NCBI RefSeq assembly: GCF_023055435.1
Contig: NW_025963890.1
Location: forward strand, 22,754,001 to 22,818,000
Length of the DNA: 64,000 nt
Reading direction: 5' to 3'
Source of the DNA: Haliotis rufescens
Taxonomy: Eukaryota
Position numbers and translations under genes: made by a program. This document shows, in pieces, positions 16,402-19,558 of this stretch (positions are counted from its first letter, which is position 1; the number at the start of each line of letters is the position of its first letter). The notes under the pieces are model-generated. The model did not search any database. It was given only the letters and a program-made list of their open reading frames with translations, and was not told where the DNA came from.

Positions 16402-17701
16402 GTACCAACACCTGCTTTTCTGCATCACATGGAATAAACATCGTTTTCAGTAAACCTTTCTTTTCAATTACTGCATAATTTTGTAACTGCATCATTTGAG
16501 TCTTAACTCTTGAGTTTGGTAATGGGACATTGCATCACCATTAGAATTGATTTTTAATTGAAACTTTTCTCTTATTTTTTCCAATCTTCCTGACAATTTG
16601 TTTTAAATAGAGCTCATGCAGGTTTTAATGAGTGACTGCATCATTCTTGTACTTATATGTATTAATAATGCCAAAACAACCCTCCAAGTCCAAAAAGGTC
16701 ATGTGACTCCTGTCGGCACTCTACTAACTATATGTAGTAGTGTTAAGGTAATTTTAGTTAATTCATTTGATTTGTTGATTAATCCTTGTGCTCTGCACCG
16801 CCCACCTTCATCCACATCCAGCCTGGCTAGTCAGCTGAACCTGTCATGGGTTTGGTAGATGGCCTTTTGTTCAGATATTTATTACTGGCAAAAACACTTT
16901 TGCTTTTTTGTAAAGATGTAGCTGGCTTTGAACACAAATCAAAACATTTCATTTGTTGGATTGTGTATAACTTTTACACGACACATGAATATTTGAACAC
17001 ACACACAACCCAGTAACTGTTGCAGCCTTCATAGATATGCAATGTCATTTTTTTATGAAGATTATATTGACAAGATAGAAGAAAACTAATGTTTCATCTG
17101 GATCCAGGGACGTCATGACACATTTCACATTGTTGATAGACAGCTAGCTGAGGCTCAGTATCACCTATAAGAGACATGTAATTAACGTGGTGCTTATGCT
17201 GTCAATCACACTTTGATATGACAGACAATTTGCACATTTCATTCTGCTTCACACATTTCTGCCTTTTTGACCACATGCAAAGAAATAACAGACAGGTAAA
17301 AACAGTAGATGATTGAAAAGGAGGGGGAAATGGTGAGTATACCAGAAATTCTAGCAAGCTGTGAGACAGACTTCCTCGCCTAAAATAAAAGCTGGTAGGG
17401 AAATCAACAGAGAGGCTTACCAAATCTGCTATATTGGACAAAACATAGAAGAATTTCACTTCTTTGTTGAGGCTGACTGGGCAAGCAGTGGACTTGGGAT
17501 GACTGTGGATGGTGTGGTGTGGAGGATTCCTTGTCTTCTGTTGCTAAATTGTCTCACTTCTACAGCTGCTCTGTTTTTCAGTTGTTTATGTTTAGTTCTG
17601 TTCTCGGCCGTTCTCTCCAACTTCTGTTCCCTGATTTCTTTCCTGTTGATTTCTCCATCACTGTTTTGTTTTGCATTTTAAGTCTCTTCGTTAACTTTCA
17701 G

Positions 17702-17855
17702 GTGTCGTATGCTCGACCAAGCTGTGAAAGTATTAAAGGAGCAAACCTTTACATTAGTGGCTTGCCAAAATCTATGACTCAGTTGGACTTGGAGAAACTG
17801 TTTTCTTCTTGTGGAAGTATCATAACTTCAAGAATACTATATGACCAAAACACAG
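17702..17855 (+). CDS. elav: ELAV exon 4a (linker and first half of RRM2), mutually exclusive
   Basis: tttcAG acceptor; [51 protein letters not shown](G); GTactc donor; 154 nt, phase 0 to 1. Confidence 0.93.
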
Positions 17856-17918
17856 GTACTCTATTTGGATTTATTTGATTTTGTCAATTTATTTACTTTG
17901 TTCAACAATTATTTGTAG

Positions 17919-18072
17919 GTATCATATGCAAGACCGAGTAGTGAAAGTATAAAGGGTGCTAACTTGTATATATGTGGCTTGCCCAAGTCTATGACACAAC
18001 AGGATTTGGAGAAGTTGTTTTCACAGTGTGGAAAGATTATAACATCCAGAATTCTGTACGATAATACCACAG
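17919..18072 (+). CDS. elav: ELAV exon 4b (paralogous copy of 4a), mutually exclusive
   Basis: ttgtAG acceptor; [51 protein letters not shown](G); GTcaga donor; 154 nt, phase 0 to 1. Missed by the ORF track. Confidence 0.93.
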
Positions 18073-19558
18073 GTCAGAGTCTTTCTCATTAGTCTGTGTG
18101 CATGATGGGTCTGTCCGTCAGTCCAGCCTCCATACCGGGCAGTTCAACGTTCATTTCGTTTCCGTTGACCAATATTTCACTTCTGTTCTTATGTTATTTT
18201 GTTAAACATGGTTGGAATGCGTTGTTTTCCACTTGTTTCTGCTAGATCATCATTTTCCTACTAATCTGCATGATTTGATAACACATTTTACTTGTGCAAG
18301 ATTTACCATTTCATCCGATATGATTTATCTACCTCAGCAGATTGTTCATCTTACATTGAGTACTGCATATGTTTCTGTATGCTTGATGTTCATTCAGCGT
18401 TGTATGTTTCCAATACAAGTGGCTTGTTGATCATATCTGCATGGATGTTGTTCAAGAAGTTTTGTCAATTGCTAGATATTTAGTGTGTTTTCCCACTTCT
18501 TAAGTTCCAATTTGAGATACAGGAAGTTAACTATCCACTACTCTAACATTCTCATTTCATTAAGATTTTGACAGTTTGGCTTGTTCAGTGTCCAAAGAAA
18601 GAAGTGACTAAGGTTATGAATTCATGTGAAAGCGTCAAAGGACTTCTAAAATCAATGAAGAATTATATCCACTTGTTTAAAGTTTATCTCTAGGTTAATT
18701 TTATTTAGTAATTTGAATACTTTGTTGTTTATTTTGGCAAGAAATGTTGAGTTTGTTGTTGTCTGTTTGTGAAATAATTTTTTCCAAGGCATGAAGGAGG
18801 AAAACTTAGTTGAAAATTTGGTTTTGTTTCTTTGGGTTTCTTGTCCTATTGAAATGGTCAGATCCTTCTAGACAGTTGTGAGGCAGTAATTTCCAGAAAA
18901 TGTGTCATAGTTTTGGCAAAGAAATGCACATATCATTTATAAACTTGCCATGTCAGGTAATATTCAAAAAGTCAAAGTACACCCACCCTTACTTTACACT
19001 TGGTTAGTGCCTACATTTATATCAACATGTTTATTTTGTAACACTTGCCATATTTAGTTTGTTACATGTTTATAATTGTATATTTTTAAGTATATGTACA
19101 TGAGTTGTTAAGTTACTTTCCACATTTAGTTGTCATTGTTTATTTGAATGTAATGATACAGTAGTGGTGTTTCCACTGTCAGTCTGCATTTACCAGTAAC
19201 TTCCCAAGCCGATTGTTCAACTTGTTTGTACTCGATGGTGCTTGTATATATTATCAAAATGCTTGGTGTAGTTGAGATATGCTTACAAGAAATATAATCA
19301 TTTGTCAAGCGTCAGCACAGTATTTATCAAATATTGCATTTTTAAATTTGATCAGCAATACTCTACATGTTTAGCCATGTACATAAATGTTAAAATTGAG
19401 CTTTAGGGTTAGTGTTTTCATGTAACAACAGAAGTTTAGACAAGACCTATACAAAGGAAAAGCATCTTTGATGTATTTCATGAGTTTCCTTTCTTTTGTA
19501 GGGATAATGGAGATTTATCTTGTTCAGATAGTAATATGATGCTACTTTACTATTTCAG

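Follow-up and report, generated by a model that had tools for sequence, protein, structure and literature searches.

The question raised by this locus is how one of two tandem exons comes to be used in a gene of the ELAV/Hu family, and whether pairings between intron segments take part in the choice. The gene, an ELAV/Hu homologue (a nerve-cell RNA-binding gene), lies in a stretch of 64,000 nucleotides, called here the window. According to a preliminary description, three alternative folds (A, B and C) around exons 4a and 4b would expose or mask the 4a acceptor as in the competing pairings of Dscam. The reading that we favour, with a probability of about 0.55, is that the frame and the short spacer give exclusivity, that the pairings are real and not of the docking/selector kind, that fold B is a possible limiter of 4a, and that proteins are at least as likely to be in control. 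The features on which this reading is based are collected in Table 1.

Table 1. Position, strand and supporting evidence of the exons, pairing arms and motifs discussed in the text
Feature	Position in the window	Strand	Evidence
Exon 3 (second half of RRM1)	16295..16402	+	RNA contig pieces on 16295-16403
Fold A, 5' arm (C-rich island)	16781..16836	+	Top pairing of the region, score 49; no change listed in X7, X15
Fold B, 5' arm (purine-rich, within the loop of A)	17377..17416	+	Duplex with 17636-17675
G/U-rich arm common to fold A (as its 3' arm), fold C and C'	17471..17528	+	Variant 17474 T>C in X7, X15
Fold B, 3' arm (in the pyrimidine-rich tract, -66..-27 of the 4a acceptor)	17636..17675	+	Target test score 44
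Exon 4a, 154 nt (first half of RRM2)	17702..17855	+	RNA joints 16399->17700 and 17852->19556; translation
4a-4b intron, 63 nt	17856..17918	+	Sequence; without any RNA joint across
Exon 4b, 154 nt, intact	17919..18072	+	Repeat D1; no splicing of 4b found in the RNA contigs examined
Three UGCAUG motifs 3' of 4b	18099..18443 (starts 18099, 18267, 18438)	+	Motif scan
Fold C as first described, 3' arm	18119..18130	+	Score 23; outside the top 8; ensemble probability 0
C', 3' arm (partner 17486-17525)	18127..18167	+	Best intron 3 x intron 4 pairing, score 45

The tandem exons and their use

Exons 4a and 4b have the same length, are separated by only 63 nt and share 74% identity in DNA and 86% in protein. 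Exons of the 4a and 4b types are also found in tandem at six other genomic loci, with the same 51-codon matches, and the spacer between them measures 95-487 nt in six relatives. The 154-nt exons arose by an old tandem duplication in the ELAV/Hu gene, and the genome to which the window belongs holds exactly two copies. A third copy was considered and rejected, its best candidate being a 25-nt match of 72% (D2).

In the contigs of three RNA runs (X1, X5 and X7), we found a GT..AG joint from exon 3 to 4a (16399 to 17700, cut +2) as well as the joint from 4a to exon 5 (17852 to 19556). Exon 4a is the dominant form in all three runs and is the default exon. The contigs of these runs, which cannot prove that 4b mRNA is absent, showed 4b joined on neither side and no joint between 4a and 4b; 4b is covered by RNA contigs, but at intron depth. 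As use of 4b was not found in any RNA contig, no switch was observed. One X1 contig carries a foreign head of 425 nt before 4b, and because this head matches the same genomic contig 22.5 Mb away, we treated it as an assembly chimera.

Since 154 is not a multiple of three, the use of both exons or the skipping of both would shift the frame, and this alone would restrict productive transcripts to one or the other. A steric block by the 63-nt spacer is probably added to this in the present species, but the longer spacers of the relatives mean that steric exclusion can be neither the conserved nor the ancestral mechanism.

Predicted pairings in introns 3 and 4

We scanned 16403-18500 by local alignment of pairing scores, with dinucleotide and block shuffles as nulls (120 of each; weaker asymmetric matches below about 35 are possibly concealed in this null). 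Fold A ranked first with a score of 49, reached by the top score in 1/120 dinucleotide and 1/120 block shuffles, and fold B (17381-17415 with 17638-17673) ranked second with 44. A top score of at least 44 was obtained in 4/120 shuffles of each kind, and a second-ranked score of at least 44 in 0/120. Among real neighbouring tiles of the window, 49 was reached in 10 of 60 and 44 in 13, the tile of A and B being among the 13. Under a stricter scoring scheme, A falls to 28.5 and B holds at 35, so that the rank of A hinges on gap tolerance.

The strings from which A and B had been drawn by eye do lie where they had been placed and are complementary, with -10.7 kcal/mol for stem A1, -9.7 for A3 and -47.7 for A as a whole, and with -16.6 kcal/mol for B1 (13 bp, one of them G-U) and -10.6 for B2. 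The extended duplex of A, with arms of 56 and 58 nt, reaches -63.5 kcal/mol on the plus strand vs -53.3 on the minus strand, and that of B has 33 pairs (19 A-U, 9 G-C and 5 G-U) and -30.8 kcal/mol. The comparison with shuffled controls that had been suggested came out in favour of the A hairpin (z -3.73, with 0/20 shuffles as good) and not of the B hairpin (z -0.82, 38/200). In the ensembles, A takes a register other than A1, while the sub-stem B2 has a probability of about 0 and B2b one of 0.125 in a single context (17250-18200).

Fold A amounts to an imperfect inverted repeat, specific to this lineage, whose pairing encloses a loop of 634 nt within intron 3. Its arms were also considered as transposon ends, which we rejected, as intron 3 matches its own genome once and there are no other copies; a direct repeat of 23 nt and 74% identity (D8) flanks the arms. 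The 3' arm contains several GG/GGG runs and UG repeats and could therefore alternatively be a candidate protein-binding element, judging from its letters. A search of 16300-19600 against Rfam returned 0 matches at E<=1.

Fold B does cover the region before the 4a acceptor, as had been claimed. In a test aimed at this target, its score of 44 was matched in 1/300 shuffles and in 1/277 real tiles (its own complement excluded), and of 17 control acceptors only one attained 3/300. The helix is predicted to be stable and includes the tract region before 4a, and we regard it as a plausible helix masking the 4a pyrimidine tract in the folding model.

Folds A and B cross, and A and C have the segment 17469-17479 in common, both as had been noted. 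When intron 3 was folded alone, B was present in the MFE and centroid structures, with a probability of 0.74 for B1 and 0.22 for A; with exon 4a added, A rose to 0.96 and B dropped to 0.03. The probability of B is about 0 when A is able to form, also in the longest contexts. The proposed competition between A and B thus holds in nested ensembles; the wider claim of a Dscam-type switch does not, and the contigs hold no use of 4b.

With respect to fold C, its strings were correctly positioned and complementary (-16.3 kcal/mol), but their pairing is no stronger than chance: besides its low rank in the scan, it had a z of -1.8 to -2.9 against shuffled arms, and fold C is at chance level. A better and wider pairing of the same arm with intron 4, C', was equalled in 1/150 and 3/200 block shuffles, and its duplex has -43.1 kcal/mol (50-nt windows). 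The partners of 17471-17528 are located about 870 nt 5' of 4a and 55-95 nt 3' of 4b. No significant partner was found for the 63-nt spacer, whose best pairings scored 30 with intron 3 (as high in 18/150 shuffles) and 28 with intron 4 (42/150).

Comparison with relatives and sister organisms

Conservation of the arms was not borne out, as none of their sequences is kept in six related loci. Blastn (word size 7) of the window against eight loci (L005, L007, L009, L012, L013, L018, L019 and L027) recovered shared exons only, and searches among six of those loci again gave exons and no intron sequence. Pairing between introns 3 and 4 was not significant in any of six relatives (16/200 in L005, 53-178/200 in the others).

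In the nearest relative, L005, a strong helix is predicted whose 3' arm occupies -70..-36 and whose score of 43 was reached in 0/300 shuffles and 0/278 real tiles; the 3' arms of both helices fall at about -66..-30 of the 4a acceptor. Of five folding contexts, four give the L005 helix a probability of 0.73-0.85, and its whole hairpin has a z of -1.48. G-U pairs are present in this helix and in B, and each of the two is weaker in the antisense sequence. A B-type helix was not significant in six more distant relatives, and L005 is accordingly the one of seven relatives that has it. The B arms of the window and of L005 share almost no sequence, their pairing across species scores 24, which is background, and MAFFT gave no arm-to-arm alignment of the two hairpins. 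As the arms are unalike and do not pair across species, common descent of the B helix is not demonstrated; fold B is nevertheless the only stem with comparative support of any kind.

In runs X7 and X15, from sister organisms, a T>C change at 17474 disrupts A and C at their core, with no compensating change listed. With 17474C the predicted probability of A becomes 0.00-0.003 and that of B 0.92-0.95, yet the main assembly in X7 still runs from exon 3 via 4a into exon 5. Variation of the arms in the sister organisms is close to the intron-wide rate (1 change in ~190 nt of arms vs ~1% overall).

Exon choice and its possible control

The docking-site/selector competition of Dscam1 exon 6, as defined in PMC6071210 and in section 4.2 of PMC7404189, resembles our locus in its tandem duplicated alternative exons and in an intronic arm (17471-17528) with more than one possible partner. 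Here, however, there is no selector beside each exon, the docking-like arm is unconserved and variable in sister organisms, and one of the proposed partner pairings loops out both exons. As the 63-nt spacer leaves no space for a selector, and with the arms unconserved and C at chance, the docking/selector reading of the preliminary description fails.

For fold B, the masking of splice signals is a parallel. Exon 6B of chicken beta-tropomyosin is repressed by a stem. Pairing of purine-rich segments with pyrimidine tracts blocks the access of U2AF65 or masks the splice site (PMC7404189, section 4.3), and in B, likewise, a purine-rich segment further upstream is predicted to pair with the tract before one of the two alternative exons, an arrangement that the L005 helix shares. 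Unlike in those systems, the predicted helix is AU/GU-rich and weak, and 4a is dominant regardless. In alpha-tropomyosin, exons 2 and 3 are exclusive through steric hindrance or a branch point near the donor. Exclusivity of this steric or branch-point type is described for OGDH exons 4a/4b in PMC7969005. The very short intron and the lack of a 4a-4b joint in the contigs recall both cases, from which our locus departs in the spacers of 95-487 nt of the relatives. Finally, frame-incompatible exon pairs are policed by nonsense-mediated decay. The 154-nt exons are like such pairs in that both or neither shifts the frame, and the related loci have the same 51-codon matches.

According to the switch first proposed, A would block B and leave 4a open, and the capture of the G-rich arm by C or C' would free B, which would mask 4a so that 4b is used. 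This is consistent with the competition of A and B in nested ensembles, with two strong partners of the shared arm (49 for A and 45 for C', each beaten by about 1% of block shuffles), with the z of -3.73 of the A hairpin and with the location of B at -66..-27. Against it, the arms are unconserved and no relative among the six has a significant pairing of introns 3 and 4, the C originally described is at chance, and C' would loop out both exons and select neither. Moreover, 17474C abolishes A in the model and X7 still assembles via 4a; C' is weaker than A by about 20 kcal/mol (-43.1 vs -63.5, for windows of different size), and both arms of A are transcribed first; and the crossing of A and B is exclusive only in a nested model, whereas the long loops could allow a pseudoknot with both. 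We consider this switch very improbable. An improbable elaboration would make B a maintained gastropod riboregulator that tunes 4a and 4b, its arms co-evolving so fast that structure alone survives, with a young A opposing it and 17474 T/C resetting the balance between sister species.

It is also conceivable, but in our opinion less likely than not, that the composition of the intron (with its T-rich tract, its A-rich runs and its islands rich in G or C) produces every one of the stems, and B too, as a neutral by-product without a role in splicing. The frequency with which real tiles match the scores of A (10/60) and B (13/60), the modest z of the B hairpin (-0.82), the absence of sequence conservation, a B-type helix in only 1/7 relatives with arm homology undemonstrated, and arm variation near the intron-wide rate would all fit this possibility. 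It has more difficulty with the a-priori test of L005, where 0/300 shuffles and 0/278 real tiles reached the score over the segment that B covers in the window, with the sense-strand specificity of both B helices, and with the excess of A and B over composition-preserving block shuffles.

Control by proteins, which we hold to be a real possibility at somewhat less than even odds, is compatible with the reading that we favour. An Rbfox-type factor acting on UGCAUG would enhance 4b in particular cells, and the G-run/UG-rich arm and the U-rich tract before 4a would be bound by proteins as well, possibly including ELAV itself. Downstream UGCAUG is an established inclusion enhancer. Three copies follow 4b within 370 nt, at +27, +195 and +366, and the 29 copies in the 64,000 bases of the window (0.45/kb) predict about 0.2 there. 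Intron 3 has none in seven species, and of the six species in which intron 4 extends to 350 nt or more, four have at least one copy in the 500 nt that follow 4b. On the other hand, these are low counts of a motif, no UGCAUG occurs in L018 or L019 over that distance, and the X1, X5 and X7 contigs contain no use of 4b.

Returning to our favoured reading, in which frame and spacer account for exclusivity, fold B could restrict access to the 4a acceptor region, and where 4b is chosen, control by proteins, for instance through the UGCAUG sites after 4b, is at least as likely. The heavy use of 4a despite a predicted-stable B, also under the B-favouring allele, runs counter to B as a limiter.

The ELAV/Hu family comprises master regulators of neuronal RNA, and the exchange of half of RRM2 through an exon pair would yield two RNA-binding specificities from one gene. 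At the level of result lists, our literature search returned no paper on ELAV that dealt with alternative exons for RRM2 or with pairing in its introns. The remaining lead is helix B, found independently in two species, and 17474 T/C is a natural variant that offers a potential ready-made experiment. If the helix does help to set the choice, alternative exon choice guided by RNA structure would have an example outside arthropods, and this in a gene whose product binds U-rich RNA.

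The tandem exons and their use in RNA

Exons 4a and 4b belong to an ELAV/Hu-type gene on the + strand and each code for the first half of RRM2, with 74% identity in DNA and 86% in protein across a spacer of only 63 nt. These are the only two copies of the exon in the animal's own genome (1.33 Gb), where intron 3, of 1,299 nt, is also single-copy.

Exons, pairing arms and sequence motifs around exons 4a and 4b (window positions)
Feature	Position	Strand	Length
Exon 3	3' end at 16402	+	
Exon 4a	17702-17855	+	154 nt
Exon 4b	17919-18072	+	154 nt
Fold A, extended	16781-16836 x 17471-17528		
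Fold B, extended	17381-17415 x 17638-17673		
Fold C'	17486-17525 x 18127-18167		
G/U-rich arm shared by A, C and C'	17471-17528		
UGCAUG sites (+27, +195, +366 after 4b)	18099-18443		

Contigs from four sequencing runs were aligned to the window, three of them spliced RNA assemblies (X1 and X5 from organism A, X7 from organism B) and one DNA (X15, organism C). Each RNA run has exon 3 spliced to 4a, 4a spliced to exon 5 with 4b skipped, and exon 5 spliced to exon 6, all through GT..AG joints. Among the matches listed for X1, X5 and X7, which leave out 6 pieces and 10 variant rows, no joint uses the acceptor or the donor of 4b or connects 4a with 4b; contigs by their nature cannot demonstrate that a joint is absent. 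Exon 4b sits within contigs that continue into the downstream intron, at a depth of 12-46 (intron level) versus 95-409 for 4a. Therefore 4a is the default exon, and no switch was observed. One X5 contig begins exactly at 17917, where a graph branch is expected at the 4b acceptor, a hint, and no more, of rare 4b use. An X1 contig (record 5) has 425 foreign letters joined at 17921, 2 nt into 4b; the end of this head maps 22.5 Mb away on the minus strand of the same genome contig, and the contig is probably an assembly chimera.

Three UGCAUG sites lie within 370 nt after 4b, the average over the window being 0.45 per kb, and one each is found within 500 nt after 4b in the related loci L005, L009 and L013; intron 3 has none in seven species. 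As Rbfox sites downstream of an exon enhance its inclusion, these sites offer a candidate protein-based route to 4b.

A 4a-peptide scan of metagenome contigs recovered 33 related loci. Six distinct genomic ones have the two exon types in tandem, the 4a-type first, with spacers of 172 (L005), 487 (L009), 426 (L012), 95 (L013), 262 (L018, which has five near-identical copies, L020-L024) and 276 nt (L019). The duplication is therefore old. The 63-nt spacer is reminiscent of the steric exclusivity described in the available text of PMC7969005; with spacers of 95-487 nt in the six loci, a steric block is excluded as the general mechanism of the exon pair, and a rule based on the 154-nt frame is possible. 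Four mRNA-like contigs (L006, L008, L010 and L015) join the 4a-type exon to exon 5, and among the matches, sorted by peptide type, a 4b-type exon is absent from every mRNA-like contig. The frame of protein P0012, from a relative, links the end of a 4a-type exon to a 4b-type exon across about 75 intron codons and is further evidence that the pair is widespread. A perfect UACUAAC branch-site motif with a conserved pyrimidine tract precedes the 4b-type exon by ~35 nt in L013 (~2990-3032), L018 (~3285-3328) and L019 (~6385-6430), and L009 and L027 have a different conserved block ahead of 4b in common. In L036 (2965-3181) the equivalent RRM2 exon is split by an additional ~58-nt intron; this different gene structure probably indicates a different animal group.

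Competing pairings and their chance expectation

The preliminary description had placed three competing pairings, folds A, B and C, around these exons, and every string that it quoted was found where it had been located and is complementary as claimed. In a local alignment scan of 16403-18500 (G-C 3, A-U 2, G-U 1, mismatch -4, gaps -8/-4), the extended A (score 49) and B (score 44) were the top two long-range pairings, and C (score 23) fell outside the top 8. With counts corrected for double-counted hairpins, a best score of at least 49 appeared in 1/120 dinucleotide and 1/120 within-40-nt-block shuffles, at least 44 in 4/120 of each, and a rank-2 score of at least 44 in 0/120 (uncorrected, scores of at least 49 numbered 57/300 and 29/300, respectively). 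When only the arms were shuffled, A had z scores between -3.4 and -4.2, B one of -4.3 and C between -1.8 and -2.9. Among real 2,100-nt tiles of the window, on both strands, 10/60 reach 49 and 13/60 reach 44, the tile holding A and B being one of these 13 and the remainder mostly strong DNA inverted repeats. The whole A hairpin folds better than its shuffles (z -3.73, 0/20 as good), and the B hairpin does not (z -0.82, 38/200 equal or better). Both duplexes are stronger in sense than in antisense (A, -63.5 versus -53.3 kcal/mol; B, -30.8 versus -21.9 kcal/mol), with no such difference for C. Rfam returned no family match in the region.

Elsewhere in the window, strong DNA-level inverted repeats at ~1100-1600, 2600-3650, 4500-6000, 56700-57100 and 61500-62650 reach 86-148 in the pairing score on both strands, well beyond A and B, and are possible transposon ends or palindromic repeats. 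Long open frames of tandem peptide repeats at 1106-1396 and 43800-46200 look like minisatellite arrays. In 48001-54000 the GC skew is extreme (+0.62 at 48-50 kb, -0.35 at 52-54 kb), and an open frame in this stretch codes for a long glycine run.

In nested-structure ensembles A and B are mutually exclusive and their balance is fragile: B1, a sub-stem of B, has a probability of 0.74 and A of 0.22 in intron 3 alone, A rises to 0.96 and B drops to 0.03 when exon 4a is included, and in the context 16295-18500 A is ~1.0 with B and C at 0. The register of A differs from that of A1, the sub-stem proposed earlier. Sub-stem B2 and fold C, which had been part of the proposed switch, have probabilities of ~0, and the highest value for B2b is 0.125 (context 17250-18200). 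A pseudoknot containing both A and B is conceivable in principle, given their long loops, so that their crossing, though exclusive in nested models, is by itself no proof of exclusivity. The earlier description had also overlooked a second strong partner of the G/U-rich arm, C', the best intron 3 x intron 4 pairing (score 45, reached by 1/150 and 3/200 block shuffles). C' would loop out 4a and 4b alike and hence would provide no choice between them; judged by sequence, the shared G/U-rich arm resembles a candidate protein-binding element.

A natural variant, 17474 T>C in X7 and X15, falls in the middle of the strongest helix in A and in C as first described, with no compensating change at the partner positions among the variants listed. 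It is predicted to weaken A from -63.5 to -58.8 and C from -18.9 to -16.2 kcal/mol and to make B dominant in the ensemble (B 0.92-0.95, A 0.00-0.003). X7 still assembles exon 3, 4a and exon 5 at high depth despite this predicted flip, which argues against strong masking by B or against the thermodynamics of the model. In X1 and X5, 17309 A>G only turns an A-U pair of sub-stem B2 into G-U.

Predicted helix B before the 4a acceptor

In blastn searches with 7-letter words, the window and its relatives, and the relatives among themselves, share exons only, so that no arm of A, B, C or C' is conserved as sequence. Nor do the relatives have a significant intron 3 x intron 4 pairing (shuffles reaching the score, 16/200 in L005 and 53-178/200 in the others). 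The sole positive comparative result concerns B. When the segment -75 to -20 of the 4a acceptor was paired with upstream intron 3 in each species, the score of 44 in the window was reached by 1/300 shuffles and that of 43 in L005, the nearest relative, by 0/300; the test was not significant in L009, L012, L013, L018, L019 and L007 (28-179/300). The control set comprised 17 acceptors, belonging to 4b, exon 3, exon 5 and exon 6; a single one was at 3/300 and the others were ordinary. In 278 real 715-nt tiles the window target was matched by 2, one being its own complement (1/277), and the L005 target by 0/278.

In L005 the helix consists of 31 pairs (20 A-U, 7 G-U, 4 G-C; -25.1 kcal/mol), compared to 33 in the window, with its 3' arm at about -66 to -35 and its 5' arm ~650 nt upstream, and in both sequences the 3' strand ends right before a common UUUAAGU motif. 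Four folding contexts give the L005 helix a probability of 0.73-0.85, and the longest context gives 0. The arms of the two species are similar over ~10 and ~20 nt only, and their cross-species pairing fails (score 24, background level). This pattern fits either fast co-evolution or an independent origin, between which two sequences cannot discriminate.

According to the available text of PMC6071210 and PMC7404189, a docking/selector system has several selectors, each exposing one exon and all complementary to a single docking site. Neither this layout nor its conservation was found here, and the Dscam-type reading proposed earlier is not supported. Literature searches listed no publication on alternative exons for the RRM2 of ELAV or on the structure of their introns. 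The available text of PMC7404189 also describes pairings between purine-rich segments and pyrimidine tracts that block U2AF65, and fold B is like these. The observation as first described is partly confirmed, and fold B is a modest, testable lead.
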